A program made the position numbers and the translations under genes. DNA of 64,000 nucleotides, taken from positions 1 to 64,000 of the forward strand of contig FLMG01000988.1 in assembly GCA_900088475.1 (NCBI GenBank), written 5' to 3'. The notes below the pieces were generated by a model. The model was not told where the DNA came from. It was given only the letters and a program-made list of their open reading frames with translations, and did no database searches. This document shows, piece by piece, positions 41,394 to 64,000 of this stretch. Source of the stretch: Hyphochytrium catenoides (lineage: Eukaryota > Protista > Hyphochytriomycota). The stretch's first letter is position 1. Every line of letters begins with the position of its first letter.

Positions 41394-44300
41394 TCATGTG
41401 ATCTGGACGGGTACCTGCGCTGAACTCTTCTGAGGTCCGCCAAAGCCTTCATGACCATGGTCGTCCACTACGATCGACAGCGAATCCATCTTACTAATAG
41501 CACATGCTGTGCCCGACTCACAGCGGTACTTCAGGGTTGTCAGCACCTGATTCACCATAGAAAGGGTTCCAATAAACTCTAGAGAGGTCTTGGAAACCAT
41601 ATTGACATATAGCCCTGGGAGTCTGCTGACCAGCAGTCTGCCGCTGGTTGTTGTGACTTCCACAGTAATGGTGGAGTTCCGTTCAACACCAAAGCCGTCG
41701 ACCAAGAACTTCTCGTCCAGATCGACATCTGCAATCGAGATCATGCCAACAGTTGTGTCTTCATCCACAACCGCCGTAATGGGCGAGGAGGAATAAGAGA
41801 TAATCGGCGGATCGTTGACGGGGAGGATTTTCACAGTGAGAACTTTAGAAACCGTGAACGAGGGTCCTGTGTTATCCGGCCCAACTGCATCATGTACCGT
41901 CACAGATAAACTGTCGTCACCATTGATGTCGCGTCTTCCAGTGTATTGTACTATCCTCAGGGCTAGGTTAACATCTGTTAATGTTCCCTGAAACTGGATG
42001 CGCCTGGAACTGGTAGAATTGCCTACAAGTATAACTAAGGAGGGGGGCACAATTCCGAGTGTCAATAGACCTTTTTCACAACTGAGCTCTACGGTCAGCA
42101 GCCCGGATCCAATATCCACGTCATTGATGGCGATTGCTTGATCCACTTCGAACTCATCTACGAAGGAGCTCATGGACCAGGCTTCCCGATAGATATCAGA
42201 CAGCTTAGATGACACTGCCGTCACTTTCTTAGCCGGGAAGTACAAACTGGAGCTTAGAGGTGTCAGAGAGATAGGAAAAGCTCTATCCAGGCTTGTTACA
42301 TCTACCACGAAGTCGGCATTCGTTTCCTCAAAAGCTCTTCTTGTACCTGCCTCTGTCCCATCAGTAATCCAAAGCTCTTGGCCGCCAGATTGGCCACTAG
42401 CAACAAAGTATAACTCGGTGGTAGGAGAGCCGCTAAAATGCCATCGCGGCGTGAAGACGGTGAAGTAGGAGGCAGATGAGCTCGCCGACCCAGGGAGCAC
42501 ATCCAGAAGTAGGAAGGTCCCCTCATTGAAGCCATTACTCCGCCAGAGCTCAGAGCCATGAGTGCCATCAGAGGCTTGGAAATATAGAATGCCATTGAAA
42601 CTCGTTAAATACCGAGGGTTCGAGGAGGCAGTCTTTCCTCCAGAAATAGGAGAAGTGTTGATGTCCTTCACCAGCGCAGCAGACTGACTGACCATATCGT
42701 ACTTCCATAACTCGACGCCATGAGTCCCGTCCTCTGCCGCAAAGTAAAGCGTGTGGTCCACAACTAAAAGAGAGCTTGGATCGGAGCTACTTTGGCCTGT
42801 GAGGTCAATCGTGTGGAGGGAGACAAAGGGGACCCTAAGGACAAGTACAAGGGGATGGAGTGGCTAATGGCAAGGGAGGGGGAGTTGACTCAACACCCAA
42901 CTAAATAAAGAGAAGCTTGTGGCACATTTACCTGGGTTGATGTCAACCACAATCCTTGTCCCAGCTTGTGAAGAGTCTGAGAGACCCCTCGCGATCGGTT
43001 CAAATCTGGAGACGCCATCGCTAACCCATAACTCGCGGCCGTAGGAGGGTGTGAAAGCAGTGAAATATATGTGCCCAGCATGTGCTGTCAAGTACAGGGG
43101 GTCGGAGTCCTCTGAGCCTTTATTGATGTCCGCAACCATAATGGTCCCTACACAACGCCGGAAACTTAGTAGCAGAAAGCCATACAGTCAATTATTTTTA
43201 TGCTCACCTGACGCTGTGCCATCTGTACGCCAGAGTTCTCTGCCAAGTAATGAGCTGGTAGCCGCGAAGAGAACGAGGTCGCTGTTTAGTGATGTCATAA
43301 AAGCAGGGCTAGAGCTTCGTGTCCCAGGGTTCAAATCAGCCAGTCGTCTCGTCCCGGCTTCGCTGCCATCGGACACCCATAGCTCCGCCCCTGCCCCACG
43401 TAAGCACGGACTGTCCTTATGTCTTTCGTCAGCTCTTTCTTCGCAGCGGTTGCTTCCTCGCATGCAGACAATGCCAGCAAACTCATTCGTATTGAGCCCT
43501 GCAGGGTCATACTCTACTACGTTGCTGTCCTTTCTCCCGGCATGCTTGAAAGCTTTCGTGTTCACTGAGTCCGAGAACCTGAAATGTGTCCTTTTGAGCC
43601 CACCCCAGAAGAAAGCATCCCATCCGCATTGGTGCCAGTAAACGTACTCCTCCTCATCTCCAGGTCGCCTTCCTGCGGCTTCGTCAGAGTGAAAATAATC
43701 CCTCCCCTCGGAGGTGGACATCCAATGGTAGCCACTGGGGCATTCGTACAAGTACGAGGTGTCCCAAGTGTTGCTTCGTGACACCGCATAAAATACATCC
43801 GAATGAGTACTGCTAAGCCGCCATCCTCCGCAGTGGTCTGCCAGATGCAATGGCAACATCCATGTCGTATCGATTCCATCAGCTTGGAAGAGCAATTGAT
43901 TTTTGAAGATGGTGAGGAAAGAAGGCATGGAGCCCTCAGGACCTAGTCAACATAAGAGAAAGAAGCGGGTCGTAAGCTTACAGAAGTTAAGTCATAGCAA
44001 AGTCATAGCAAAACCCACAAGAACCCAGCCAAAGATGGTATGTACATCAGTCAAAGTGAGATAAGATCGGACAAACCATGGAAGAAGGTGAGAGCATGCT
44101 TTCCCTTCGGGCAAACATAGCTTTTACTGTTACCTGGTTTGAGATCTTTCAACCTCACGCTTCCTGGACCTGTTCCGTCGGATTTCCAGAGCTCCTCGCC
44201 TGCCTCGCCATCACTGGCTTGGAAGTAAAGATACCCATTCCATGCTGTGATGAAGCTGGGGTTAGAACTTTTGGATCCAGGATAGATGTCCTTGACCATT

Positions 44301-47300
44301 TGCTTCCTCCACGTGTGGTCATCATAGCCCCAATCCCCACTGTCGTGTGCTTGTCGTGCCCCTTCTGTTCGCCAGAGCTCGTATCCGGCATCTGCTTCTG
44401 GTATCGGCAGCCTAGCAGCCCGGTCACGATAGAGAGCACCCTTGATTTGTATGGTGGAGTCTTCCCTCAGTTCTACAATGCTGGTCCCGTCCTCTCTGGT
44501 TGGAAGGGTAATAGTTGGTGGATCATTGACGCTCTCAACAGAGATTCGGATAGTTTGGAGATCAAATTTGGGTCCTCCGGTCCCCCTGTTGCCAAGATCA
44601 TTGCAGGAGATATCGACTCTTGTTTCTCCTGCGAAATCCTTGTTGCCCTTAAAAAATAGGTACTGCATAGCTCGAGTAAGATCCTCAAGGTTGCCTGCAG
44701 TCGCATGGTGCCAGAAGAGGTAAGTGACTCAAAGACAAGCAGTGGGGATTTCAGAACACTCATGGTGAGTAGGAACTCCTATCTCAGAGCTGGGACATCT
44801 CACACTCAAACATGAAAAGAGCGAATGGAGACATTAGTGGCAATTTACTTCTCAAAAGCGACTTGTACTTCAGCCACCTACCTTTGATGGAGAGGAGAGC
44901 ACTCTCATACCCGCTTCCCATTGTTATCATGATGTCACTAAATGAAGATGGAGCCGGGCTCGCTAGGCTAATGTTGTGTTGAAAAGCGATGGACTTGTTG
45001 ATTAGGGATATTGTCCCATCTGCGGCGGAGAAGCTAAGCTCGAGTAGGTCTGCAGACGATTTTCCCGTCGGGTTCACGTCCACATCCCTGACCGTTATGC
45101 CCTGAAGGTGCAGAAAGCTGTCCTCCAGCACAGAAAACCAAGTGGACCTCTGAAGGGCAAGGGATTCTTCATCGGGAGTACTCACTTGATGCTCTCGAAT
45201 GGCGAAAGGAAGTCCAATGACTGGCGGGTCGTTGACGCCTCTTACATATACAAAGACATCAGCTGACGCTGATAAGGAAGCCTCATGACCGTCCAACCCC
45301 ATATCGCTGACAGTTAACTGTATTCTATCCGCTCCGTCCTGATCTGAGTTCCAGTTAGGCTCTGGGAGGTAAGACACTGCAGAGAGAGCAGCTTGCAAGT
45401 CCTTCAGCCTGCCCTGGATCTCGAGGGATGACCACAACGCTTGTGGAGGTGATCCACTTGTGTGAGAAGTCGCCGGTGCAGTCTCATCCTCGGCGATAAG
45501 ACTAGCGTTAGCCCGGGCGCCGACGTCCCAGATAGCTGGGCCACCCTGTAACCTCGCTGTCTCTTGCGCTTCTGAGGGGACTGAAAACAATAGTCTTTCT
45601 GTAACAGGAAGCTGCACACTTCCCCGAAAGACTTCCAATCGTACGGTTAACAAAACGTCTACTGACGTATCTCTATCCAAGGGGTCATACGCATCGACAT
45701 CGTCTATCAAAATGGGAGGAAGCAAAAGGGGATGGTCTTCCTCAGTCCAAAGTATCCAGTCGGCGGCACTTATGGTTGGGGCATCATTTACAGGGAGGAC
45801 AGTGATAGCGATGGACACGGAGGTTAGCTGTGGTCCGCCTAGCCCTGTGTAGCCCTGATCATTTGCAGTAATCGTAAAGACGTCTGGGCCATAGAAGTCT
45901 TTCTTGCCTCTATACATCATCTCTGTCAGTGCCTGATTTAGCACCTCCAGGCCTCCGCTTAGCGTTATCGTACCCTCTTGCCACAAGGTAGCACTAGGTG
46001 GCTCCTTACTACCGAGAAAAGTAACGCCGGTGAGAACGGGAAAATTTAGTAAGCCATGCAAAGTGGAGATCTTAAGCATGAGGGTTCCTGTGGTCTCTTC
46101 TACATCGCCATCCTCTATCTGTAATCCGCTGATCTTGATAGGCGTGTCTTCGTAGACTGTCAAATGATCCTGTTCACCCTCCGCCTTGCAGAAACTGCCA
46201 TCATGGAGGGAATTGAATAGACCGTACACGAGGGTATCGCGAGGATCCTTTGCACGACAGTAGTACCCTTTTTCTTTGTATAAAGCCGTGTGTATGATCG
46301 GTGGGTCATTTTTGCCGGACACTGTTATAAACCGGATGACAGCGATGGAACTCTTGGGGCCCCCGGTCCCTCTATGGCCCAGATCGTCCACCGTCAAGAC
46401 AATCTTTGCCGGGTCCTTTCTTAAACTCGTCCACTGGGGCCGCGAGAGAAAGGTGAGCTCTCTCAGCGCTTCATTGAGCTGTTGTAATGTTCCGGACAAG
46501 ATAATATGTGTGTCTGACTCACCATCACCCTCAATGAAGAGCGCTCCGGAGTGTTGGCCAAGCCCAACAACTCCGAATTCTGCGTCAACTTTCAACAGAA
46601 GCCTATCGTCTTTTGCGCTATCGTCCTCTATCTTTATATTCCGCACAATCCTAAGGCTGTTCTCCTCAATTACGAGAGGAAGTTCTGGAACAAGGACCCG
46701 AGGAGGATTGTTCACACCAATGACCTCCACTTCAACTGTCGCGATGTCCTGGAGCGCTTCGCTTTTCATGGTCTCATTCCCAAAGATAAAGGCTTCGGCT
46801 TTCACTTTGCGCACCGTGACCGTAACCGCATCTAAACCGTTCCAGAATGGTCGAGGTCGATAGCAGATATGTCTCAGTGCAGCATTAGCGTTTCGTAACG
46901 TGGCAGTGAAGACAAGGGAGTGCGATTCAGTATCCTTCCCGCTGAAGTAGAGTCCAGCAACGGTAGAAAGCTTCACAATACCCTCCGAGCATTTCAATGA
47001 TAACCGGTACACATAATCAACTACCGACTCTTGCACGGAAACGTCCTCAATCCATGCCCCAAAGCAGCTTGTTGTGTCTTCAAAGAGAGAGAGACGATCA
47101 ACAGCGACGCTTTGGGTGGCTCTACCCTGCTGCAGCTGTTCTTTGGGCGAAAGGGCTGCCCTGGTCATACCCTCGACGTGAAGAATGGGCGCTTGTGCCT
47201 TTTTCCTAGTAAACAAGGTGATCGAGGCAGCGTCCGATCTCGGTAAAAGGTGTTCCTCTACGTGGGTAGCAAAGAAAGCAAAAGTAAGCGCCATGCGCGA

Positions 47301-50300
47301 TTTTCGGAGAGCTTGATGTAGAGGGCTATAGAGCAAGGTCAAGATGCCATAGGCCAAAAAGCTACTAGAGCAGTAAACAGGAGTCAATCGACAGGGGTGG
47401 TGTGAACGCATACAAACTCCCATAAGTAATCAAGCCTTCCCAATCCATAATGACTAAGATCACTCAAAACAATTCTGTACCTTTTGCGGGGCTTTCAATC
47501 TCGAGGAAAATTGCGTCAAACTCTTCGTGATCCGCGTTGGAGTAGGGGTCCGAGGAGTAGATTAAGCATTCCACCGCAGCATTCAATGCTTTCAGAGTTC
47601 CGACGACGGCCAGAAAGGAGTCTCCTCTCAGATCGCCAGCGAGATATCTCAAGCCCGACGTGCTGGAGAGTGACAATTGACCTAGCTGGGCATGCGCTCT
47701 CAGTGTGATAAGCGAACCCGGAGGAGAGGAAGGATCTTCCAAAGAGATGCCGCAAAGTTCTGTGCTGCCGCCATGGATGACCTCAAACCTTCTTTGTGAG
47801 AGAAGAATCTATAGGACAACGGTGGCCAACATTGCGTTAGAATACTGTTTAGTTTAGAGTGTCAAACGCTCAAAGAGAGACGGAAGTCAATTCTAGAGGG
47901 AAAAGACCAACTACGATCTCTACCGTTCACCCTTATGGGGCCCTGCACTGACCTTAGGAGGCACGAGAACCTCATCCACAAAGAGTGGTAGAATTGCTGC
48001 AGATGCCCTTTCTCCGCCAGATCCAACATTCCCAAGGTCATTAACAAAGAATGACAACATGTCTTCCCCGGTGTAGAAAAGATCGCCTGTGTAGCTCAGC
48101 GAAGCAAGCGCTAGGTTTGCTATGTCAATCCCTGCTACGAAATCAACGCAACGACGCTCTAACACCTCAGAGTTTGAACAGTTGCCCTCATTCTGCCTCT
48201 CATCCAGAAGTCGCAGAGGGAGGTCACGTGGGATTTGGAGCTTGCCCCTTCTGCACCTAACCGAGACTCGGAGCTCTCCCGCACTTCTTGTTCGTCGTAT
48301 GGAGATTGGTAAACTGTCAGAGATATCCACATCCCGAACAAGAATACCATCAAACGTTACTGCAGAGCCTGCAGGCACATGAAGAACGTCGACTGCGAGG
48401 ACACTTCCGATAGAGCTTCTTTGATCAGTATTCCCAGCGTAGTAGCGCATGCCAGGGAGATCAATTTCGGGTGCGTCATTCACTGCCTCTACTCGAACAA
48501 AGAGTTGGTTACTATGCTTCCATTCAACGCTCCCATGTTGTAGACCCACCGGCCTAGAAGCCTCTCTTCCACTGATCGGAGATACGACGAGCTGTAAATT
48601 CTCTATATCGAGGCGATAGTTGCTGTTCCAATCTTTTAGAGGCACGTAAAGGAGGTTTCTCCTTAGAAGCCAGTTGACTACGCAACCCGGTCCTGAGACC
48701 TGAAATGTGGTCTTAGAAAGTAGGCGTTTTTCGACCCCAAACTTCTGCCACGATCGTTCGTCAACATCTAGGAGCTGGAACGTGCCAAATTTGGCTCTAA
48801 TTGACAGTTCAACCGGTATTGATGGAGGAAAGCCTGGGATTTTCATGCCCTTAGTGGACCGATCACGACCGCTGAGATATACGGATGCCCGAAATGGATG
48901 CAGTTTGACCCCATACAAACTTTCTCCGCCTTCCAAATCTACGTAAAGGTCACTTCCCGTCCGATCAAACAGCCTCCTCGTTCCACGAGTACTTCCGTCA
49001 CTAGTCCATAGTTCGGTTCCGTGAACATCATCCCCTACAAGGAAGAGAAGCTGGGGAAACAGATCAGCCGGTCTATCCAGTCCCGGCTCAATGGTAGTCA
49101 ATGCCAACGGGAAGGAACTCTTTGATCCTTCGGCAATATCCTTCAGGAGAAATGTGCCACTCAGCGTTCCATCACTGACCCAAAGTTCCGCTCCCACGAC
49201 AGCGTCATTTGCTTGGAAGAAGACTTTGCTTTGGAAGGAGGTAATAAAGGACGGTAGTGAGCCCGCGGATCCAGGATTTATGTCGCACACTAGATGACAG
49301 CTGCTAGCAGCGATGTCTAATACCCAAAGTTCTGGTCCATGTATCCCATCATCGGCCTGCATGAAGAGAAGGCTATCTGAAAGAGCTAGAAAACGGGGGT
49401 TTGAACCTCCTGATCCTGGGCGGATATTGCACACCACATTGGTCCCAATGGCGGTACCGTCCGAAAGCCAGAGTTCTCTTCCATAGATCTCTTCTGAGGC
49501 GGAGAAGTAAAGTAAACCATTTGAAACAGTTAAATCTCTAGGAGAGGAGCTTCTGGCACCGAACTCAATGTCGGCCACTAGCTGGGTTCCCGCGGCCGTC
49601 CCATCTGTCACCCAGAGTTCTTCCCCGTGTTGTAAAGTAATTGCAGTGAACGCCATAATCTCCGAACTCATGACCGTCAGAAAGGATGGGGACGAGGAAT
49701 GGGCACCTGGCCAAATGTCCAAGACACGCGTAGTGCCTCTGACACTTCCATCGGTGACCCAGAGCTCCTTTCCTGCTCGGCTATTACAGTCCTGATCTTG
49801 TTCATCATGGCAGGAGCGCTCTTCTTTTAGACAAATTATGCCGGCAAAGTTAGCGGTCATAGTCCCGTACTCCACCGGATGGTCTTCACTCTTTCCAGCA
49901 TGTTTGAAGGCACCCGTGTTTCCTGAGTCAGAAAAGCGGAAGTGAGTCCTTATCCCTCCCGCCCATGTGTAGCCTTGCCATCCACATTGATTCCAGTAGG
50001 TGTACTGTGGAGAGGACACTTTTACCGAAGCATCTCTAGTTGTCTCCACGAAACGCTCTAAGCCCTCCTTAGTTGATGCCCAGTGGTAGCCCGCCGGGCA
50101 TTCATACAGGAAGTCCACTCTCCAACTAGTCTCTTCGCTGACGACAAAAAGAACTTTTTGGTCCACAGAACTTTCCCTTATACCATGACACCCATCAAGA
50201 CGCCAGGACGGTGGTCTCCAGGACGAGTCAATCCCTTGGGACTGGAAAAAAAGCATATTTCTGAACACCGCGAAATGGGAAGGATAAGAGCCCGCGGGCC

Positions 50301-53300
50301 CAGGCGTTAGGTCCGCCAGAAGACGGGTACCTAAGGAGCGATCAATTAGCTGGAAGTTGCTCCTCTGATGGAGAAAATTGGGATTGAGCTTTTCTGAAAA
50401 ATGAAACAGCGTCCACCTTAGCAATTTCACACCAGGGCTCTTACAAGTAGCGCACTCGAGTATAGTGTCTTACAAGCCGACATTGTTCAAGCAATGCTTA
50501 CCGTCAAAAGTTCCATCTGAGAACCAAAGTTCGGGTCCATGCTTTCCGTCGTCTGCCTGGAAGTAGATATAATCTCCATAGGTAGTGATGAACTTTGGGA
50601 AGGAGCCTTCGGGTCCGGGAAGCACATCTTTCACTCTCCAGACTCCTTCCTGGTTAGCCTCGCCGTAGGATAACACTCTTTCCCCTTTTGAAAGAGACAC
50701 CCTCCAAAGCTCATAGTCTCTGTCTGTACTTTGCAGGGGTTCTCTAAAGCATTCTTGGCGGCTGATGTTCTCAATTTGGACCATGTCCAATGTAAGAGGC
50801 TCATCTTCCTGAATTACCACGAGCCTACTCTTCACAACGACGTGAGGTGCTGCAGGTGCAGCATCTAGATGAATAAGAACCCGGGCGGCAACCTTTTCAC
50901 TCCTAAAGCAGCTCTCCGGCTCTCTTACAATGTTCTGAGAGAGGTTAGGGTTACAAACCTCTCGTACCTCCACCTGCAGACTCGCAGCTCCCTCAACCGG
51001 CTGCCAAGGAGCATGGTACTGGAGAGTACTGAGGGCTGAGTTGATGTCGCTTAGGGCTGCACTCAAAATTGCAGTGCTGAAACCGTGTATTAAATTCCCG
51101 TCGAGCTTCGTGAGATGCAAATGGTCTGTACTCTGTAGAGGGTTAAATTAGCTTACGCGTGGGAACGACCAAAAGGAATAAATGCTGGATAGAGGTTACC
51201 TGGAAAGAGAGCAGTCCTTGAGAGACGGAAAGAGACACGTCGTACAGGTCCGAGGGATCACCATCAAGCACTTGGAACATGGAGAGGCCCAACACACTTC
51301 CTTCAGTGGCGTGGAGCTCTAGAAACTTATCCTCTTCTGCCGTTCTTACGGGCGTTGCACCAAGTATACTTAGACTAACAGGGTCATTAACACGCTCAAC
51401 CAATATTGGGATCATTAGTCTGGCGTGCTTTGGACCCCCAGCTCCTAAGGAATGGAGCCAAAAGATACGGATTATAAGTGAAGGGCAATAGAGTAAAAGC
51501 AGAAACCAAATGGGAAATCGGAACCAAATGTGTAAAGAGGTAATGGTCGGTTGCGTAGTGAGAACAAGATGCTTGGTCAGGTCTGTGGAAATGGCGACGT
51601 TTGAAGACCATACCAGATAGGCCGTTATCAGAAGCAGTGATTTGAACCATGTCATGTCCAAAGAAGTTCTTTGGTGCAAGGTACACTAAAGATGATAGGA
51701 ACGCGTTCATGGAATTCAAGTCGCCCGAGCGATGAAGCTCCATAGTGCCGATCAAAGATGAGTAGTTGAGAATAAGGGTTCCTCTATCAGCGATGACTGA
51801 AAGATTATACATTCCATCTGACCCACTGTCAACATCCTTTAGTGTAGCGCGAGGTAAGAGCTGCGGTGTGTCTTGGTATGTCCTCACTTGACCAGCATCT
51901 GGACAACGGCAAGCGGAGATGGTGAGATCCTAACGCTTGAGAATGCATGAGATGATTTCTCCCTACCTTCAACAGAAAGAACCGGAGGATCGTTGATGGG
52001 TGCAATGCCCAGTGATATGGTGCGGAAGGATAGCGGGGCAGACACCGAAGAGACTCCAAGGAGACCCAGATTCTCCACCCTAACTCCTAGCTGCACCTCT
52101 CCATAAAGATTTGGGCCAGGAGTATATTCAAGCAAAGAGAGAAGGTGATTGACCTCCTTCATCTTCCCACTGACGGAAATCAAGTGACCTGAGAAGGGTT
52201 GAGGAAGGGTTGGAGCTGATCAGTGCATCAAGTAAGCTCTACGGAAGACATATAAGTTGACAATCAGAGTCACTCGGCTAAAACGAGAATGTAGTCCAAA
52301 TATTAGCAGGTAACTACTTGATAAGCTCAAGAAAATGCAGGAAACTGCTTGGAAGCCTTCGCACACATCTAAGACATAAGCAAAATTGATACCTGCACTT
52401 TCCCGCAATTCCACTGCTGACAAAGATCCCTGGTAGTTAATCTTTCCATAGTTAACGCGCTGCAACTCCTCTCCTTTGACAGCTGCGCCAACTCCTGTAA
52501 GTCCCTCACCCCCGAGCAAAAACTTGTGATCCTCCCAAGGGTTCTCGCGCTGAAACGCAATTGTCCAAATTCTTCCACCCTCCTTGTCCACTGGGCTGCC
52601 AGCCACCTCCACTGAAGCAGATGCATTTGAGCCAGAGAAAGGGGTAAGATCACATATCAAGCCCTTTATGTGCTCAGCCGTGGCGTTATAAGGGATAGGG
52701 CTTGTCAGGAATGGGCCGTAAGATAGACTGAACGTTCCGCCAATTGAATTTGCTGGAGTGATAGCGGAGACGCGGGTCTAGATTCGGGAAATTTGTAAGT
52801 GTCTGCTATGATGAGTTGGGAGACGAACGAGATTATGGTAGTTTGATGCGGCCAAAAAGTTGGAATAGCATAAGGATATTATGGTGTTACAGACTTCCAT
52901 GTAACGGTTACCTTGGCATTCGCTCCTCTTAGGCCGTCGATAATGTCAGGGTGTGGGAAGTCAGCAGGTAGTCCGCGGAAGGTGACTCTCCAGCGAAAAG
53001 AGTTTGGCGGGAAAGGCCCTGACCGCACTACAGATACATGGACATCCGATAGCAACGGACGCCACGTGGGTAGAACCGTCAGTTGGTTCCTGAATAAGTC
53101 CATAATGCGGCTTTCAACGCTTTCTCCAGGTCGTGCGCCATTCTCTAGCGACTCGCCTTCATCTTCTCTCCTTGCAACAGCATTAAAGGCTATAGGGTCC
53201 GACGAAAAAATCGCACCACTGTCACTGCGGAACCCCCTCAAGTCAAAAGACACTATAAAATGCCCCGAGATGACAGATTGCCCGCTTGTAGATATCTCAT

Positions 53301-56300
53301 AAACTGGGTCTACATGCTGGGCCTGTGTACGGATTTGATATAACCTGGGCAGACCGATGCCTAATAGACAATGAGGGTAGAGGAAACCGATGACTGATTT
53401 AGTCAGACCACCGATATATTATGAACAGCAACACGGAATGCAATCAGTTAAGACCCTTCGTGCGCAAAAGCCAAAACATTCAATGTGGCCAAACAAATTC
53501 CCCTCGGCTCACCTCTCTGTATTTGACGTATCTGGACCGCAGCTTTGTGTCCTTTGGTTTTCGACGCAGAGTCATCTCCAGTCTGTACGGGAACAGTCAG
53601 GAGTTCTGAAGTCTCTGCAGAGAGCAATCCTCCCCAGCGCTGAGACAGGAACGTAATAAACCAAGTGAGCTCTCCATGTAGACCTTTTAACGACCTGGTC
53701 ACCTTGATAGGCCCAAGGATCTTCAGCTCCTGACATGCACGTGGGATTGCGTAAAGGGGTTGTTGAGTGAAAGGTGGTCTAAGTGGAAGTACGCTGGATT
53801 AGGGCTACGCTTAGACAAACCTGGAGAGCATCTTGAACTTCCTCAGCTCTTGCGTTATGAGCTATTGGGCGACTAATTAGTCCGCTAAGAGACAGACGGA
53901 AACTCCCTGACAATGCCGTAGCGTATCGCTTAATTGTCAGGCTGATACTGCCATCGGACAAGGATGCCTGGTTGCCGATAACTAATGGGGCAGGGGACGA
54001 ACCCATAGAGTAAAACGTAATCAACCACAATGACTCTCCGATCTGTGGTTTGTTCTCTTGACGGGAAACAATAAACTTAGCCGGAGATCCTTTATCTAGT
54101 AGGCTGTTGAGCTTGCTCATTACCGACTCCCCTTCGCCAATCCCAGGACCACCTCCTGCGCCAGATAACCGTCAGGCACGAGATCAACTTAGCTGTCAAA
54201 AAGGAAGAAGTATGCGCTAAAGCAAGAGAGATTTCAGTAGAGCGAGCCCGGTGGACACTGTCTTTCACACATTACCCATAAGTTCTTGCATATCAGACCC
54301 CACAGCGTTCACAGCAATGGGTCCAGTCTCCCTTTGGGGGTCTGTCTTCCAGCGCAGGGTAAAATGACCCGCAACAGGTGCCGACCCGGTCCTCATGATT
54401 CGCAGAGCCATGATTAAATCCCTAGAAGACACAGAGGTGGACACCGACTGGACCTCAAAAGTTGAGACGTATCCAAAGCCAAAAGTGACGTTAACGATCC
54501 GATCAAGCTCTGGATGCTCCTCTGTGACGGAGAACTAGTCAGAAAACAATCTGCAATAGAAATACGACGGCTAACAAACTGTACCTTCAATGGGAAGAGG
54601 AGTTCGTAGCAAGGTTAAAGACCAAGACAGGTTAACGATTGGCAAGCTATTCAATAGATCCAGGTGCTCAGAAAAAGGATGAAAACATCACAGTGCAGGA
54701 AGCATAGGACGCGGTGGGATAAGCCGTTCGAATTCTTACCATACGGTCTGCTCTCTTGCTCAGGAAGCACTGGGAGGGAAAGCGATATCGGAACGGATGT
54801 GCCTTTATCCTCGTCCAGGCTAAGAACTGCTGGAGCCTGTATTGTTACCCGTTGTTCATTTTGTTGAACCTCTAGAGCCAGAATCTCCTTCGCAGTGCTA
54901 CTCCTACCATTAAGAGTCTTCTCTACCGAGAGATATACCTCCTGAGGCAAGCCAAACCCGAGCCTGACGGCAAAACTAACTGAAGCTAGGACTTCCGTTG
55001 CCTGGCGCCACTCTGCGATATATGTCAGATTGGAAGTGGAAGTCAAAGGGTTGTTGACCCAGAGGATGTCCGAAAATTCCTTCATAGGGAGAAACAGGGA
55101 CCCAGGAAAGGAAACGGAGATGGAAACGAGATAGGTGGCTCCATCCGGAGTGTTATCCGCAAGCCGGAGTCCAAAAAGTGGAGCAAGTAGAGTAAGCTCT
55201 CCGTCTGTCACCTTAGCAGACGGCGAGTCCAAAACTATCGTCACATTTTCGTTCGGAATGACCTTTGCCATAAGTGATAATGTGGCACCGCTAAGGTCGT
55301 CGTTGCTGTAGGAGTGTCCTTCTGTCAAATGCAGGTCGATGTTGTCTGCGCCTAGAAAAAAAGGTTGTGGAAAATAATATATGTGTGACAAAGCGATGTT
55401 CATCGCCAGGGGGCTTCCTACGAGCCTTAATGAGGAGTTACCCCTTGGTTCTTGAGTGTTAAAAATGCCAATTCCTTCCAAACTCGGCGATGCATGGAAG
55501 ATCCCATGGCTGCACGATATATTCAAGACCATCACAAAATCTTCCGGAGGTAGTTCCCAGTCAGGATACGTGAGCTGCACATGCGTCAAGCTGAAAGAGG
55601 CTCCACTTTCTACTTCTACAAAGGCCTCTCCATTCAGGACTGGCTTGTTCGTAAAGGTAAGCTGGGGCGCTCGTTTCAGCCTCTCTATCGCGACTCGAAG
55701 GTACTGAATCTTCGATACTCCACAGGCTGTCACGTTTAGTGACAGTATCTCCACTCCGTGGAAAGAAGTATGCGGCATATAGTGCAGACGCTGTACTGTT
55801 TCATGAACCTCTCTTAAAGCGCCATGCATGGTGTACGCCGAGTGAGAAGCTTCTCCTTCATAGACCCCTTCGGCGTCTAACATTACTATCCGACCGGACT
55901 TCTTTGCGAGTTCGAACGCGATCGTCCACGGGCATTTCCGCGTGTGGTTATTGTGAGGAACCACTTGCATAGAGGACAAAAAGAGTAACTCGCCCTCGAT
56001 ACCTCTATACCCTTGAGGTGGAGCCAGGATGTCGAAACTAGGCAGTTGGGCAAGACGTCTTACCCTCCAGGTCATTGTCGCGTTTAGGTGTCGCAACGGT
56101 TCGGAGGACGTTTCCAATGAAAATGAGGGCCCATTGGCGGGGAATCCATCGTCCCACACAACAAACGACACGACTTCATCTACGTCTTGGTGCTCCGTAA
56201 TAGGCAGGTAAGCCAGCGAGCTGAAGTAGGTGTTTAGCACATCCAAAGGGGCAGCAAAGGAGAGGACACCATGCGAACTGAGAGATGGTGTATTCAACCC

Positions 56301-59300
56301 GGAAAGAGGACTTTTGCCGTCAAACAGAGGAGTAAAGCTGCGCACGTCCCGGTTACCCATAATGCCCAGTAGACCTTGGTGTGATTGTATCTCAACCCTG
56401 ACGTTTCTCCAGCTGTTGGGTGTATAGTCTGGATCAGATACTGTTATCGGAGGTATCGGGATGAGACCTTTTGCATGTTGCGTGGTTGCTTCTTCCATAA
56501 GGGGTCTTACAATCTTGAGCCTTGGACTGTGATTTACTTCTTTTACGTACACCAAGAGTTTGGAGGTATCCAGCAGGATTGAGGATGTTAAAAGGTCACT
56601 TTCTTTCGTGAAAGAAGCTGAAAGGGAGAGTGGCATATGCTGGAACAAGGATATCTGGACGGAGTCCATATGGGATGCCTGTAGAGCTGCGGCTTGCCCA
56701 ATTTCGTAGTAGACTTGCTTTATCAATCCATTAAGGACTTCGACACTTCCAAGCAGATGAAGCTCAGTCCCGTTTTCCGACAGTAACATCCTGTACCCTT
56801 CACTCTCTACATTCTGAACAGACGTCCGCATGAACCCTAGCTGTCCGAAGGATGAAGAGAATTGGAGGCGGCAAAGCATATTGGAGGAAGCCATAATGCG
56901 ATAACCTAAGGATATGTGGTAAGAATACACGCGATAAGGATAGATTTCACAATGCGAGAGGTCGGACACGACGTTAGCTCAGAACTCAAGCCTCATTATG
57001 CAGTAGAGATGGAATAGAACCAGAGCGAGACCAAGACTGGGCAAGTAAGGAATGTGGACTCTTCGGCTTCACATCGCAGGAAGTTTAGTCTTACCTTTTG
57101 GAAAGTAATACAATTCCCCTTCAGAAATAGTAAGAGCTGGTGGCAATCCTACAAGGGATGGAGCCACGTCCTCAACGCTTACCACCAGATATACGGTTGA
57201 TCGAGCGGTCAAGGGGCCCCCAGATCCAGTGTTTCCATTATCGGTCACCCACAGAGACAGAGAGACATTTCCTTCTTTTGCTCCAAAGAGGAACAAGCCC
57301 TTGCTGAGTACGTCATTGACTGCTCCTATGGTCCCGGATATCTGCACATCTCCGAACCGGCTCCCTGCATCGTCCATTATCCATGTGCCTGGAAATGAAC
57401 CCTTCACTACCAAGTGGCCCACTGAAGACTTAAGCCTAGCCGTTAGAAAGCCTTCTGACGACTCATCCAGGTCCGGGTCGTAGAGAGTGAAGAACGAACA
57501 TGGAAGCTCTCCAGCACCCAGCAGCGGGAGAGTTTGTGGATGGTCTCCACCGTCGTCATCATTTTCTGTGAAAATAACTGGAGGGTCATTTACAGGATTG
57601 ACCCAGACGGAAATGGAACTTTGACTCGCTTGTCCCGTACCCCTTGCAAGAAGAGAGACTGAGAGTTCATCGAACCCATTAAAGTTTTCTCTTCCCAAAT
57701 AGTGGAGGGTAGACAAGACATGAGAGGCCCCGAAAAGTGAAATGTTCGTACGTAGAACTCCCTGATCTGACACAATGCGAGAGTCAGATCCTGCCAAACT
57801 CTCTCCGAAAAGGAACCGAGGAGAAGCAGGTCCCGCTAATCCTTCTGGGTGTAGGGTCATCGCCAGGGTCCCTTGAGTACATGAAGCAGTGACTTCTATG
57901 AGTTCATCCTCCTCCGGCCAGTAGTTGCATTCTACTCCTATCTCACCCACAGCAAGCAGCACGTCTTCAGTGCCCTCTATAAAGTCTGAATTGGTACCGG
58001 AGACAAAGCGAGGCGAGCAGTGCAAAAAGGGCTTTGACCCCCACTTTATCTCTAGCGTTTCGGTGGCCAAACCCCCGTTTTCGTCGTCCGCTACAAGATC
58101 GACAGCCATGAGCTTGGAGTATTCCTTGGACATTGGAAGAAATGCCATAGAGGAGAGCAGCCTATTGATACTTCCAAGCTCCCCCCGAAACTGCAGGAAG
58201 TTTACGGTCTAGGGAGGTAAATACATAAGAATTCCAGTAAGTTTGTATGTTTAGAGCTCTAAAAGAATATTAGAGCAAAAGGAAGCTAACTGGACACCAA
58301 AGACGGACAGATGGGTAGCTAGAGTCAATTCGTGGAACAGTTATGAGAGAGAAGCTGAAAGAGGGGAAATGAGCGCCGCGGACAGTACCGTATTGCCATC
58401 CCAGTCCAGAAAAGTAAGTCCGGCGGTGGAAGCGAAAGGGAAACTGAGTAACCCTCCTGTACTAGCAAGGGAGACTTTCAGCTGCAGATAGGGCTGTAAG
58501 TGTGCATCTACATCCATAACTTCTGAAGGGATCGTAAGAAAACCTTCTTGCGCTTCTTCCACTATGTGGGGTGAGGAAGCGACCCACCGAACCTGTGGCT
58601 TATCGTTAACGGCGTTGACTGTGAAGGCCAGATCCATTGTAAAGTGGCGACGAGAAAGGTCACTATCCTCATATGATAAAGAGACCTGACATTCTGTGAG
58701 GCCAAAGAAATCTTGACTGGGCATAAACTGCAGCGTTGTGAGTGCGGAGTTAATGTCTACGACGGAGCCTGCGACCTGCAGTTGATGATTGTCGCTATCT
58801 ATCTGGTTCAAGAAAACCTGTAGGTTGACTACGGATAACAGAGAGAGAGAACCATTTACACAATTAAAGCTCGCGTGAATCACCCTCTGCATGGTCTCTT
58901 CCGCGTTGATATCCACGCTCAAGCCTGTGACAAGGACAACTTCATCTTCGTCCACGGTCCAGATCGGTGGATTCTGATGAACCGTAAGGTGGGGAGGTTC
59001 ATGTCCAGGTTTTCCTATAACGGGTATAGCATATGATGTCTTGGCAGTCGCTCGCAGCGCGTCATCGTCTGAAGGACGGAGAAAAGAAAGATTACAGCCA
59101 CTTAGTGCTATTTCTTCCGCAGTACAGGAGCCAAAGAAGTGCAATCGGTACGGCTTGAAGTGGCTTGTTCACTTCTTTCAGGGCAGATGAGAATCTTAGA
59201 GACTGTAGCACGGCTAAAATGGGCTACTAAATACCGAAAGGGACAGCTATGAGAGCAAAGGAAATTTTTAAGGATGCTAGTCATGCATTGATGCGACGCA

Positions 59301-62300
59301 GGGGAGGAGGGAGGGGGTTAAATAAGGGTTAGATCTTACTTTCTTCGACCTCCATTGACAGATGTATATGTATTGTATCCACTCCATCAAAGCGCGGCTT
59401 GGGAGAGTACAGAGCTTTCCCTAGGCCACAATTGACACTGGCCAGGGTGCCCTTCATAATAAAGGGGCGAGAAGCGGAAGCCGCAGTGGCGGAATTGAGC
59501 GCAGGACTAGGCATGGTCTCAGGAGGAATAGCCAATAGACCCTCGCAATAGCCCACCACATCGATGGTGCAGTTCCCGCAGGACAGGGTCAGTACTACCG
59601 TAGCGTCGGAATGCTCATAGTTTGACTTTAACGCAACTTCTTTCAAAGCAGCAGCCTATAGGTGCGAATGCAAAGGATGTTTAGCCATGTTGTCTGTGGG
59701 ACCGAGGGAGAAGGGCTGGAAAACCATATGATAAAAATTTTGCTATCAAACGTTTGTTGCATCCAAGACCTAGTTAGGTGTAGAAGGTTAAGCCGCCAAA
59801 AGGGTCCTAGTAGCTGTTACGCGGGAAACACCTTTACCTTAGTGCCCCTGACAAAAATAGACTCGGGCACGTTAAGGGTCAGTTCTTGACGAAGCTCCTG
59901 AACCCAGATATCAACTTTTAATCGCGTTTCTTGTAATCTTCCACCATCCAACATTCGGCCCGAAACCGTAAAGAGAGCTTCGACTGGCCCATGTTGCTGT
60001 GTTGAGGGTACAAAGCTGAGGGTCTTGAGGACTCTGTTAATGTCTTTGGCTGTTCCTTGGAAGAATAGCAGAGAGTTGAGGGCAGATGAGGAAGTGGTTG
60101 ACGAGATCACCTGCACACCACTTTTGTCCAACAGCATGATGGAGCCAGCAGGCCGAGTGACAATGGTGAGATCGAGTACGTTGGCTTCATCCTCAACAGT
60201 CACAGGACAGGGTGCGATGGACGGCAGTGGACAATGATCCTCAAGTCTAAGAGTAGAGAAGTGCAAAGTCTCATTCTGGGCCACCAAGTAAAACTCTGAG
60301 TCAATGGTGAGGGCTAGAAATGGAGCAGGAAATTAAGGTATGTATTAGCCCGGCCCCAATGCCCATGCGGCCGAAAAAGGTGGTGACTTACTTGGGGCTC
60401 TTGTAAATGGCAATAAAGCAAGAAATAAGACCTTCGTCGTAGTTGACAATGTCTGCCCTTGCTCATCCTCAGCCGTCATGACTAAGTTCAATATCCTTTG
60501 TGACACAGGGCCCGGGTAGAGTTCACGAACCTCCCATGCTAACTTCTCTGGAGATAAGGCAACAGACGAAGGCTCAACTAAAGGAATGTCACCAAGGGTT
60601 GGGGAGAAGCTGATCACCCAAGTTCGTGTGTGCTCTTGCCTGAGGGAATGGGGGATTAGCTCAAAAGAAAGTATAGGCGTTATAAACGGAAGGCATTTCT
60701 GGAAGTTTCAGTCGGAGCTACGGTGCTCGAAAAGAAATATGCGTTAAAAAACACCTCGTTCCGATCCTTACGAATCAAATCTTTGGATGCCTCGAACATA
60801 ATCTGGGAATGGGAATTCTTGGCGAAACAGTGCCAGAAACTCGTCCGACGAGGCATTGACAGGGACAGCAGGAATAGAGATGGTGTGCCCATTCAGCTTC
60901 AGCGAGATACTGCAGGATTAGAACCCAAGAAGGGAGAAGGTGAAAGCCCTTAGCGATTCGGCGAGTGATATGGATTCTTTCTGAGTTAGTCTCCGAGCGT
61001 GGCAACGGACTAGGTCGGAGGGGTCATTCCGAGAAGCAGAGGCCAAGAGCTCAAACACGCACCTAAAAGCACCAAAGCGATCAAGTCCGGCCATATCGTT
61101 CTCAATCAGGACATTGGGAGTCTCAGTCCCTCGCAGCTGGACGAGGTCGTTCTTGACCAAAGTGAACGACAATGCCGTGAAAGGCACATTCCGGAGCTCA
61201 ACCCCCCAAATGTACTCACCATCCATCGATTGTAGAGATCTAGTGACAACCACGCGCTGTGAAGAGGATCAGCTAACAAGCAAACGCTAAGGACGGCGTC
61301 ACAACAGCACCAACCATGCCGGGAAAGACGTCGTCGGTCCCTCCTTCTTGTATAGTAGTGACAGCAACTTCGCCATGGGGAAGGGATGCGACGCCAATTG
61401 AAAACTGCTCAGAGTCGCCTAACTCAAGAGGAAAGGTGATGCGCCAAGAGAATCCTCCTTGACTGTTGATTGAGCGCTGAGTTAAGGTTGAGTTAGTACC
61501 TTGTCTGATCAGCGACAGAAGCAGGATAATACCATACCTCGATTTGCAAACCCGCAAAGACATCTTGGAGGGTATTGAGTGCATCCCGCAATTCGTCGCT
61601 CCCTGTAAAGCATCATATTCATCATTAACTTACTGCTAAGCTTCGAACGGGTCTCAGAAACAGGACATCATATAACGTATGCAAGCGGTGGAATAACGAT
61701 GAAGAACATTGAGTAGTAGTTTTTAAAGTTTCGGGAACATCTTGACATTCCTCACCTATGTTGTAGGGTAGAGGACTGGTGCTCTTGCCGTTCGCATAGA
61801 CCGTGAAATAGCCAGAAGTCACTTCTGAGGCTGGGGCAACAGCTTTTGTGGTGATCATCTACGTGCCGTTTAGCATCATCAGGAATACGGTAAACAGAAG
61901 CAAGTTAGCCCACCGAGCGTAAACAAAGGGAGAATAGGCCAATCGAGGACGTTGCTTTGGAAGGTTCCGGTAATGAAATTATACAGACCTGAATCTCAGG
62001 CACACTGCTATCTCCGTAGATACCATCTCTGCCGGCGAAACAAGACATTCCAAGGATGCCCTCTTGTAATGATAACGCTTGGTCTGGGCCAGACCTCACG
62101 GGCAAAGCATTAAAAGGTATGGGAGGAGAGGAACAGATGGCGTCTTCGGGTCTGTCAAAGTGCCGGTTCGGGTAGGAAAAGAAAAGAGTCCGGAGGTCTA
62201 TTCCCAGAGAGAAAGATCCACCCGCAATGCCAGCTTCAGAGGAAGTATGGATTTTCATCTTGAATCTATCATCTGGGACACGGACAGTAATTTCCTGAGA

Positions 62301-64000
62301 TTCTCCCCTGAGATTTCCTTCTTCCCCAATCCTTCTCCGACCCACCACATAGAGGCGACCAAGATCTTCCATTACGCTCTCTAGAGAGCCAAACACATCA
62401 ATTGTGCTCGCATTGCATTGTAAGGCGGCTGTAGTTGACTGGTGAGGAGGAGCCTCACAAAGAATATCGGTTCCTGCTTCCAACCGCACCTACAAGAACA
62501 AAAAAGACATGAGAAACGACGGCTGGAATATGTATACCCAACACTACTGAACATACCCGGAAAAGCTCGGAACTCCTTCCAAACTTACTAGACAGGGAGA
62601 GAGAAGACAGAGAAATCAGGGTGTTTTCTTGGCCAAACATCATTCCAGGACCGAACAATACAGGGATGACGGGAGCTGAGGTCATCATAACGTGTAAGCC
62701 AACCGTGGAAATCTGCTTTCCTGGAAGTTGCAAACTAACATTCACCAATCCTATTAGTGGCTCTTGCCGAGCTAGTTCGCTGTTTCGTACAGGTAACAGC
62801 TCCAGGGAGGCCAGTGTTCGATTAAGATCAAGGGCCGTTCCTTCGACTGTGAGCGTAGTCCATAAAGGATCTACGGCAAAACTTAGACCCATCTCCTCAA
62901 TCTTTTCCCATCGTAGCTGACTCAAAGAGAAAGGACAGTGGCTCTGAAATATCACCTCTGCGTACTCTGAATCCCTTAGCTCCACGAATGAGAACTCGCG
63001 CTCGGCACGTTCCCCAAGGACAGAGCCGCATATGGGCACCATGCTATCCCTGATCATTCTAGCAACCACTTCCACTGAATTAGCGGTGGGATCTTCTAGT
63101 CTAAGAAGCCCTGCCTGGACCAATGGAGTCTTCTCGGAAGGTGGTGTTATCATCAAAGAGAGCCCGTTCCCGCCGACCTTCTTCCAAGCCTCAGACAAAA
63201 TGAGGCCATCAGCCGGTGTCCTGACTACGAAGTATATCCTAAACGTCGATTGGGCCTCCTCAGATTTTGCCCCTTCCATTCTTACGAACGCCTGTTCCGA
63301 GCCCAGCGTTTGATCCAGGACTTCTTGCAATTCTGCAAGGGTAGCGTCAATGCTGAGAGGGGGAGACACGATTGGCTCCCTCCCTCTGTGCAAAATCTGT
63401 AAAGCAAACTGTCCGAAAGGAGGACTGGAACCATCGGCAACGGAGCGCACATGCAATCTGGCGCTTTGAGGTTGAGACAGGGAGAGCTTTGAAACATGTA
63501 ACAGGGGTACATCACTACAATGGTTGACGAGCGTAGTGGGAGGAAATGGTAAGCAGTAGAAAGGTCAAATAAGAAGAACGTGATTGGGAGAGGGAAAAAG
63601 TTAGCTCGTTCTGATTTGGGGTGGGTCCTCATCTTTCGTACCCGCGCTTTGATAGGAAGGTAACGGTCCAAGAATGGAACCCTTCCCTGGTGGTGCTTCG
63701 CTCTACGGATACTCTTCCAGTGTTTGGAAGATTCTCCAGCGCAGCTCGCAACTCATGCGAGGATGCTTCCAAGGAAATTGGAGTGGTGACTGCAGACTCC
63801 TCCCAAGGGTAACAGGGAAACTGCAGCTGGAATGTGCCCCAAGGCTTCACTGATCCCATGGAGATCACCTCGGTCGTGCTTTCCAGTGAGCCTGTCGTTT
63901 GATGATTACCCAATTAATCTCAGAGATGAGCTCAAGATACTAATCACTTCAAGTACGCGGGACCGAGACCAAAGATTACAATAAAGGACAACACTAAACG
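41394..64000 (-). CDS. Giant extracellular adhesin-like protein: cadherin-like repeats, two ELWxxDGT beta-propellers with Cys-rich inserts, and N-proximal beta-rich repeats; about 30 exons, 5' end outside the window
   Basis: There is a continuous chain of minus-strand ORFs. Frame-preserving GT-AG junctions were checked by hand at the 57095/56905 junction and for the introns between about 50500 and 42800; the rest are plausible but less rigorously checked. The protein has many (V/I)NDxP..ED..DxD..G.L..LN.AL..L.Y..G.D..V.D.G..G.GG units and 16 ELW motifs. It stops at 41394 after VPVQIT. Confidence 0.9.

Follow-up and report, generated by a model that had tools for sequence, protein, structure and literature searches.

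The minus-strand open frames at positions 41394-64000 of the window, a 64,000-nucleotide stretch of Hyphochytrium catenoides contig FLMG01000988.1, join via GT-AG introns into one frame; judged from sequence, they belong to one real, intron-rich eukaryotic gene that is predicted to encode a secreted protein of ~8,500 aa. We infer that this giant gene is the orthologue, in this genome, of an old stramenopile family and that its architecture was not built in this lineage. In the reading that we propose for the whole and hold with moderate confidence, this single stramenopile-family gene would encode a secreted protein with a rod body and two heads, each a propeller with a lectin-like unit, that serves as an extracellular fibre or adhesin.

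The original prediction, made from the window alone, described co-oriented exons encoding an estimated ~6,000 aa and left the gene open at the window edge; both statements hold. A single frame runs from an ATG at contig position 73171, with 9.2 kb of the gene lying beyond the window end, down to the stop at 41394, a span of ~31.8 kb. The gene model is an ab initio exon chain obtained by dynamic programming, with exon borders predicted from sequence; it comprises 8,537 codons in 47 exons, separated by 46 GT-AG introns (55-423 nt; median 128 nt), and its in-window coding sequence of 18,455 nt corresponds to ~6,150 aa. With the start fixed at 73171, the model recovered unaided the 66-nt first intron that had been derived by hand. 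At least one exon border is wrong: homology favours an acceptor at 50331 over the 50393 of the model, and the true acceptor of this propeller-1 exon is most likely at 50331/50330. Four upstream exons of a first model (73183-75028) were dropped as spurious after the signal-peptide ATG at 73171 was found. All search and fold queries were single exons or ORFs. Elsewhere in the genome, a search for eukaryotic SSU rRNA retrieved a single kind of match, an organellar rRNA of bacterial type on the last contig, and seven organellar ORFs gave no exact match when looked up. The features in the window are collected in Table 1.

Table 1. Features of the giant gene within the window, in order of position.
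Feature	Position	Strand	Evidence
In-window part of the giant gene, model exons 19-47, ~6,150 codons	41394..64000	-	Exon chain from dynamic-programming model; colinear tblastn chains with giant relatives
Stop codon TGA, the conserved C-terminus of the family	41394..41396	-	Relatives align to 1-12 residues from their own ends
Two terminal rod modules, the last one ending the protein	41397..42170	-	Rod-core HMM (iE 8.5e-23 and 1.4e-17); alignment
ELWxxDGT beta-propeller 2, seven repeat matches over four exons	42336..44236	-	TIGR04534
Six-cysteine module copy 2, after first blade of propeller 2	43364..43880	-	48% identical to copy 1; own-genome search E 8e-62
Rod-module run between the propellers, including the sole Pfam Cadherin_4 match	44883..48483	-	Pfam, NCBIfam, rod-core HMM, alignment
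ELWxxDGT beta-propeller 1, seven repeat matches	48964..50571	-	TIGR04534; AF2; Foldseek
Six-cysteine module copy 1, after first blade of propeller 1	49745..50238	-	AF2, VIA-align, Foldseek, Atlas
Second WxVTF array, ~5 copies	52319..54521	-	Profile matches
Central rod region, including a 2,166-nt exon	54740..60313	-	Rod-core HMM matches
First WxVTF array, in-window part; continues to ~contig position 65000	60392..64000	-	Profile matches

The sequence upstream of the window, where a signal peptide or anchor was originally to be sought, supplies the only good signal peptide of the gene region: at 73171, a basic stretch is followed by a hydrophobic core of ~10 residues (short, and judged by eye). 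At the other end, the plain beta-strand noted in the original prediction is the last strand of a rod module, and the predicted protein has no C-terminal hydrophobic tail and no TM or GPI-type end. The relatives described below end at the same point, and those that are full-length have a similar N-terminal start with a signal peptide, likewise without a C-terminal anchor. Because a cleavable-looking signal peptide is combined with the lack of a TM or GPI-type end, the protein is predicted to be secreted and to have no membrane anchor; of the two options first offered, anchoring at the N-terminus or secretion, the latter is retained.

The body of the protein consists of ~30 related beta-rich rod modules, each ending in a VNDPP-type linker of the kind first noticed in the window; matches to an HMM of the rod core extend from exon 2 to the final residue. 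The repeats recur as originally described; their likeness to tandem-95 or bacterial cadherin-like domains is weak. Pfam searches with twenty ORF pieces gave one Cadherin_4 match, one marginal Big_9 match and almost nothing else. The Cadherin_4 (PF17803) match, in ORF 44787-47423, scores 38.3 bits (gathering cut-off 25.1) over profile positions 3-42 of 71, and the other nine ORF pieces have no match to this family. The best score with the tandem-95 model (NF012211), 45 bits (E 8e-12), is below the curated cut-off of 90; the others are 13-30 bits, and coverage is mostly of the C-terminal half of the model. No classical cadherin (PF00028) was matched in the ORF pieces scanned, and the rod profile retrieved from the PDB only CELSR1 (E 1.2), in an alignment that covers only the final strand plus the ND linker. 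In this respect the rods differ from the oomycete ‘cadherins’ reported with the Pythium ultimum genome (PMC2926784), which, like the present family, are oomycete adhesion-type repeat proteins of debated horizontal origin; those genes have true cadherin EC domains with LDRE/DxND motifs. Two oomycete relatives of the present gene have only marginal Cadherin_4 or Big_9 matches.

The two ELWxxDGT propellers of the original prediction are confirmed. With TIGR04534 (a model of 47 positions; curated cut-off 65), five ORF pieces score 315.4 bits (E 2.8e-96; ORF 47923-50430), 142.9 bits (ORF 41397-42761), 88.1, 77.8 and 52.8 bits, the last being below the cut-off, and the 14 single-repeat matches fall into two groups, 50571-48964 and 44236-42336. 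The blade number is 7 plus or minus 1. Propeller 1 is modeled by AF2 with pLDDT >90 over residues 187-445, and its Foldseek matches are the TolB and LRP6 propellers (E ~1e-7). Each propeller sits inside a rod module in the C-terminal third of the protein, and each carries one disulphide-rich insert of ~150 aa with six cysteines.

The fold of this insert is probably C-type-lectin/Link-like. The AF2 model of copy 1 has a pLDDT of 86.8 and a pTM of 0.80; when it is compared with known structures by VIA-align, the best match, a weak one, is the Link domain of LYVE-1 (Z 4.6, 95 aligned residues, rmsd 3.9), and nearly all of the 40 rows are structures of the CTLD superfamily. Foldseek (E ~1) and Atlas (TM 0.44-0.47 to Fib_succ_major clusters, which we take to belong to the C-type-lectin fold class) give weak matches. 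No Pfam family (Lectin_C, Xlink, etc.) matches the module even at E<=10; the diatom family DUF7495 (Atlas score 0.81) was rejected in the absence of Pfam support. The module occurs nowhere else in the genome. The head of this protein is triply nested: the probable lectin-like unit is set into a propeller, which is itself set into a rod module.

Three points had escaped the original prediction: the true gene size, the fact that the WxVTF arrays make up a module family of their own, and the existence of uncharacterized orthologues. A profile of the cysteine module gave 380 matches, 52 of them at E<=1e-30, with many giants among them, and all of the named relatives are stramenopiles. The giants, of 4,600-8,000 aa, include Aphanomyces invadans XP_008864276 (6,747 aa), Saprolegnia parasitica XP_012204860 (5,656 aa), Thraustotheca clavata OQR99178, Aphanomyces stellatus KAF0693387, Pythium oligandrum TMW60407, the brown alga Choristocarpus tenellus CAM9142464 (a partial model) and the thraustochytrid Hondaea fermentalgiana GBG25535 (7,534 aa). 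With XP_008864276 and its relatives this gene shares an ELWxxDGT propeller, located towards the C-terminus, into which the six-cysteine module is inserted. Full-length orthologues that are already characterized were named at the outset as a finding that would refute the prediction; the colinear giants are all annotated as hypothetical, and literature searches with four orthologue locus tags, ‘ELWxxDGT’ and giant stramenopile proteins found nothing relevant. One metagenomic relative adjoins a VPS13-like gene, so its contig is eukaryotic.

The giants share with this gene the order WxVTF arrays, rod run, propeller with six-cysteine insert, two final rods and C-terminus, at 25-45% identity over hundreds to thousands of residues; scores of the cysteine-module profile against them are 130-266 bits at matching positions, and exon-by-exon BLAST agrees. 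Since colinear giants are spread over oomycetes, one brown alga and one thraustochytrid, the architecture is old in stramenopiles. The Hyphochytrium gene has ~46 introns and, with its ~8,500 aa, marks the upper end of the family size range; many of the relatives of 5,000-8,000 aa are from intron-poor organisms. Two propellers are present here and in the oomycete relatives; a single cysteine module was seen in Hondaea, in the incomplete Choristocarpus model and in each of several giants from metagenomes. In a provisional tree of the cysteine modules, with an unresolved backbone, copy 1 and copy 2 of the oomycetes group apart from each other.

Two arrays of small modules, together about a dozen, interrupt the rod chain. 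The module (~80 aa, here named WxVTF) is laid out as a strand, a loop, a helix with an ALExLP-like motif and two strands, and it showed no relationship to the rods in a profile comparison; a word search with one module, using a length window that excludes giants, returned no match. When the WxVTF profile was searched against the PDB, matches at E<10 came from two sources only. The first is a protein of a phage tail tip (E 2e-10 to 1e-12), the ‘tail tip cage gp23’ in PDB 9d93, a significant match with three tandem copies (E 1e-12). The second is the stramenopile tubular mastigoneme entry 9ufe, with four chains (OCM5, OCM6 and a pair labeled ‘Tubular mastigoneme protein’) at sub-threshold E 0.25-0.9; the OCM5 alignment covers the whole module. 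The ~80-aa WxVTF-type module is thus shared with the phage protein and may be shared with the mastigoneme chains. These proteins are 366-748 aa long and contain neither rods nor propellers nor the cysteine insert. EGF-like motifs are a feature of tubular mastigoneme proteins (Ocm/Mas type), and none of the twenty pieces searched with Pfam gave an EGF-type domain.

These matches raise the alternative that the protein is associated with the hair (tubular mastigoneme) apparatus of the flagellum or the zoospore surface instead of with a general wall or matrix. The known range of the family (oomycetes, this probable hyphochytrid member, a brown alga and a thraustochytrid) matches the groups with tinsel flagella, and Hyphochytrium retains a tinsel flagellum (PMC5795050). 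However, the matched mastigoneme chains, being paralogues of one another, do not count as independent matches, and at least seven other loci in the genome, including other giants, contain the WxVTF module, so sharing it is not specific; we consider this alternative unlikely. We give equally little credence to its extension to the whole family, in which all stramenopiles would use this structural protein at the surface of the zoospore or flagellum (e.g., in the base or terminal filaments of the tubular hairs, the defining feature of the group, or in the first adhesion of settling spores) and it would have arisen by early fusion of a bacterial-type propeller, a lectin-like insert and a hair-protein module.

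A second alternative is that two or more neighboring, co-oriented genes have been wrongly joined, given that the modeling procedure had to return a chain in any case. The longest gap, 423 nt at 61063-60639, exceeds the others; a word search with the 721-aa product of exon 31 (54741-56903), using a length window that excludes giants, retrieved nothing; and homology to the relatives is patchy upstream of ~67.4 kb. The 423-nt gap, however, lies in the middle of a WxVTF module and probably hides a small exon; a further start with a good signal peptide is absent; and tblastn chains from the relatives to the DNA are monotonic, continue in subject coordinates across exon junctions and reach 41397-41412. 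We conclude that the frames form a single gene, as was originally proposed, because copies of one kind of rod module are found all the way from exon 2 to the stop codon and because giant relatives of 5,000-8,000 aa are colinear over the C-terminal half, with the WxVTF arrays in the same order, to their own C-termini; a split is, in our judgment, rather less likely than the flagellar alternative.

The remaining alternative, a recent bacterial transfer of the gene or its propeller part or bacterial contamination, is very improbable: a word search with the propeller exon found only bacterial ELWxxDGT proteins (30-47% identity) within an allowed length range that leaves the giants outside, and no other ELWxxDGT repeats occur in the 61-Mb genome, but the gene is on a 250-kb contig and has 46 spliceosomal-type introns, several of them within the propellers, the bacterial matches do not extend into the rod flanks, a pattern scan of limited sensitivity found no confirmed locus for the cysteine insert in ~185,000 bacterial and archaeal species genomes, and the presence of orthologous propeller-plus-insert heads in other stramenopiles contradicts a recent origin. 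A bacterial origin of the propeller repeats themselves, at an undated time, is plausible. The suggestion that the gene was assembled from horizontally acquired modules remains plausible for its bacterial-type propellers and is given up for the architecture, which predates this lineage.

The bacterial ELWxxDGT proteins (TIGR04534; e.g., in Archangium, Microcystis, Planctomycetota and Acidobacteria) are intronless and mostly 1,000-1,500 aa within the searchable length range. In precomputed Pfam lists, some also combine the propeller with cadherin-type domains; those seen lack the six-cysteine insert, and their flanks are unlike the rods described here. Invasin/intimin- and RTX-type adhesins have a similar design, that is, beta-sandwich rods tipped by a C-type-lectin-like head, and the heads of invasin, InvE and intimin are among the fold neighbors of the cysteine module (Z 2.2-3.3). 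However, these adhesins have no sequence relationship to this protein, in which the lectin-like unit is placed within the propeller and no outer-membrane anchor is present.

In the preferred reading of a secreted, rod-bodied protein, the long rod of ~30 modules and WxVTF arrays would act as an extracellular fibre or adhesin, perhaps stiffened by Ca2+ at the acidic linkers, as their motifs suggest. The two propeller-plus-lectin heads are putative binders of glycan or polysaccharide; the candidate ligands are the wall of the cell itself, where binding would retain the protein, and an outside surface. The more specific roles suggested at the outset, such as prey capture, stalk or scales, are speculative.

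Giant ELWxxDGT-propeller proteins, putative repeat adhesins, are common in bacterial genomes, and this gene is a counterpart in eukaryotes that has been conserved over a very long period. It offers a clean case for studying the entry of bacterial-type surface modules into eukaryotic genomes and their establishment there. A testable lead comes from the weak resemblance of the WxVTF module to mastigoneme proteins. The size and conservation of the protein suggest an important role at the surface in a group that includes major pathogens of fish, crops and algae.

On the minus strand, co-oriented open frames lie in a row from 41394 upward (ORF listing), with introns of the ordinary GT-AG type whose junctions can be read in the sequence (see table). 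The window covers the first 64 kb of a contig of 250,654 nt; we also examined the next 20 kb of the contig, where the open frames of this giant gene go on to about 73 kb. Exons were chained by dynamic programming, using codon usage from long ORFs and self-trained splice matrices and forbidding in-frame stops; the chainer joined the whole stretch between ~73 kb and the stop codon (TGA, 41394-41396). Among ATG-led hydrophobic starts, a scan gave a single clear signal-peptide-like one, at contig position 73171 (a basic stretch, a core of ~10 hydrophobic residues, then small residues). Placing a donor (G/GTATAA, 73029) and an acceptor (TTTAG, 72964) by hand gives a 66-nt phase-1 intron that links this exon in frame with the first region of VNDPP-linked rod modules; with the start set to 73171, the chainer picked the same intron, and four weak exons upstream of ~73 kb in the first chain were superseded. 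The resulting model has 47 exons, a coding sequence of 25,611 nt (8,537 codons), and 46 introns with a median length of 128 nt (range 55-423 nt), for a total span of 31.8 kb. The original prediction had estimated by hand ~6,000 aa in the window, for a gene still open at its edge; the modelled in-window share, 18,455 nt (~6,150 aa), agrees with this size, the exons do extend beyond the edge, and the upstream look for a signal peptide or anchor that it had proposed leads to the start at 73171.

Features of the giant gene (positions above 64,000 in contig numbering)
Feature	Position	Strand	Detail
Intron	50501/50331	minus	GTAAGC...TTAG; splits ELWxxDGT repeat
Intron	43207/43148	minus	GTGAGC...TGTAG
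Intron	42931/42797	minus	GTAAAT...CACAG
ELWxxDGT repeat group	50571-48964	minus	six-frame genome search
ELWxxDGT repeat group	44236-42336	minus	six-frame genome search
WxVTF array	about 65000-60400	minus	
WxVTF array	about 54500-52300	minus	

This model is ab initio, and at least one exon border is wrong: repeat homology favours an acceptor at 50331/50330, with which the ELWxxDGTxxGT repeat spanning the junction is perfect, over the modelled acceptor at 50393, which brings in ~20 residues without homology. The longest modelled intron (423 nt, window 60639-61063) cuts a WxVTF module, the N-terminal half of which is absent from the model; a small exon is probably hidden within it. The next minus-strand gene upstream is an uninterrupted 992-aa ORF (contig 77002-79977), and the ~3.8 kb between it and the start of the giant gene contain no convincing exon. 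Elsewhere in the assembly, the last record (C4759, 48,127 nt) is organellar, with a bacterial-type SSU rRNA (1,140 bits) flanked by tRNAs; seven of its ORFs, looked up by exact sequence in the protein collection, gave no match.

Each search or fold query was one exon or one ORF. A profile of the six-cysteine module, a ~150-aa insert located after the first blade in both ELWxxDGT propellers, identified 380 proteins at E≤1e-3, of which 52 reached E≤1e-30; among the matches are many of 4,600-7,982 aa, with the module close to the C-terminus. The named relatives are from oomycetes (Aphanomyces invadans, A. stellatus, Saprolegnia parasitica, Thraustotheca clavata and Pythium oligandrum), the brown alga Choristocarpus tenellus and the thraustochytrid Hondaea fermentalgiana, and all are annotated 'hypothetical' or auto-named; the best relatives are those from oomycetes, the sister group of the host. 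In exon-by-exon BLAST and relative-to-DNA tblastn, the relatives match the exons in colinear, monotonic chains; because their coordinates are continuous over the modelled junctions and run out at the C-terminus of each relative, the exons appear to form one message, and these alignments are the best available evidence for it. A relative from a metagenome that bears the label 'ELWxxDGT repeat protein' adjoins a VPS13-like gene, so its contig is eukaryotic; a second giant of metagenomic origin has the brown-alga protein as its closest match. On a JGI metagenome contig (L007:1-18577), the relative beside the VPS13-like gene is called as two genes on the same strand, 400 nt apart, of at least 4,011 and 2,858 aa; the gene caller has probably divided a single giant gene. 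A pattern scan of limited sensitivity confirmed no locus for the six-cysteine module in bacterial genomes. The giant gene belongs to a stramenopile family that is uncharacterised though already sequenced; we found no literature on the gene or its family.

The two predicted ELWxxDGT propellers are borne out: ORFs 47923-50430 and 41397-42761 match TIGR04534 (NCBIfam; cut-off 65 bits) at 315 and 143 bits, respectively, and the 14 ELWxxDGT matches in the whole 61-Mb genome are all within the giant gene, in two groups. In an AF2 model of a 792-aa exon product (alignment of 21 relatives), the propeller region has pLDDT >90 and matches the TolB and LRP6 propellers. As read from the sequence, each propeller is inserted between the 'I.I.D.D' and 'L.L....G.L' strands of one rod module.

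The two copies of the six-cysteine module are 48% identical; the module has no match in Pfam, even at E 10, and an own-genome search found no other copy. Its AF2 model (44 short relatives; pLDDT 86.8, pTM 0.80) matched best, by VIA-align, the Link modules of LYVE-1, CD44, TSG-6 and aggrecan, together with CTLDs, the aerolysin/pertussis APT domain and invasin/intimin heads, all at Z of 4.6 or less; Foldseek returned snaclecs and langerin (E about 1), and the Atlas returned Fib_succ_major clusters (TM about 0.45). These scores are weak, yet all point one way, and the modelled fold is probably C-type-lectin-like. A 1,431-aa metagenomic protein (P0121, ENA) has seven modules in tandem (519 bits), and ~10 matches of 180-195 aa resemble single-module proteins with a short leader, so the module is also found outside propellers.

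An HMM grown from one rod unit found 31-36 copies of the C-terminal core ('GTL..LN.AL..L.Y ... D.G..G.GG ... V..VNDPP'), spread from exon 2 as far as the last residue, and 11 complete units can be aligned across ~140 columns. The recurrence of VNDPP-type units thus stands, but the predicted likeness to cadherins is weak: similarity to tandem-95 reaches 45 bits (cut-off 90), Cadherin_4 has one match (38 bits), and the PDB gives CELSR1 at E 1.2. The AF2 model places a helix at the 'LN.AL' motif, so the module is not a plain cadherin fold.

About a dozen WxVTF modules (~80 aa each) form two arrays. They have no Pfam match; in the Atlas they match unnamed eukaryotic clusters at 0.97, with diatoms the commonest source. 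In the PDB, their profile matches the phage 'tail tip cage gp23' (9d93; three tandem copies, E 1e-12 to 2e-10) and four chains of a tubular mastigoneme entry (9ufe; E 0.25-0.9), and no other entries; the OCM5 alignment covers the entire module. The link to mastigonemes is a weak lead. The module occurs in at least 40 further places in the genome, in at least seven other loci, including other giant genes. A second giant gene with many WxVTF modules (C4192:21,900-71,300, minus strand) has stop-free frames of 11,308, 3,045 and 1,939 aa and so is largely intronless, within an intron-rich genome (PMC5795050). More clusters are located at C521:130-161 kb, C441:77-87 kb, C1316:62-67 kb and C2121:45-48.6 kb, the last with an open frame of 4,984 aa.

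What the original prediction described is confirmed and extended, and its interpretation holds in part; it raised a possible assembly from horizontally acquired modules. A bacterial source of the propeller is plausible because database entries with the ELWxxDGT repeat are overwhelmingly bacterial and, in this genome, the repeat is unique to the giant gene; however, the full architecture is common to distant stramenopile lineages, so any transfer was ancient and the assembly did not occur in the host's lineage. Bacterial repeats are up to 47% identical, no lower than the orthologous propellers (about 40%); these values reflect the strong repeat consensus and do not indicate the direction of transfer.

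The giant protein is very long, modular and conserved, with two propeller heads that each carry a disulphide-rich insert. It is secreted, one of the two options that had been proposed: it has a signal-peptide-like start and no C-terminal anchor, as do the full-length relatives. We regard the giant gene as a variant form of the giant repeat adhesins. Its product would be an extracellular fibre or adhesin in which the acidic linkers may bind Ca2+ and the propeller heads may bind carbohydrate; because the protein has no anchor, retention, if any, would be through wall binding.
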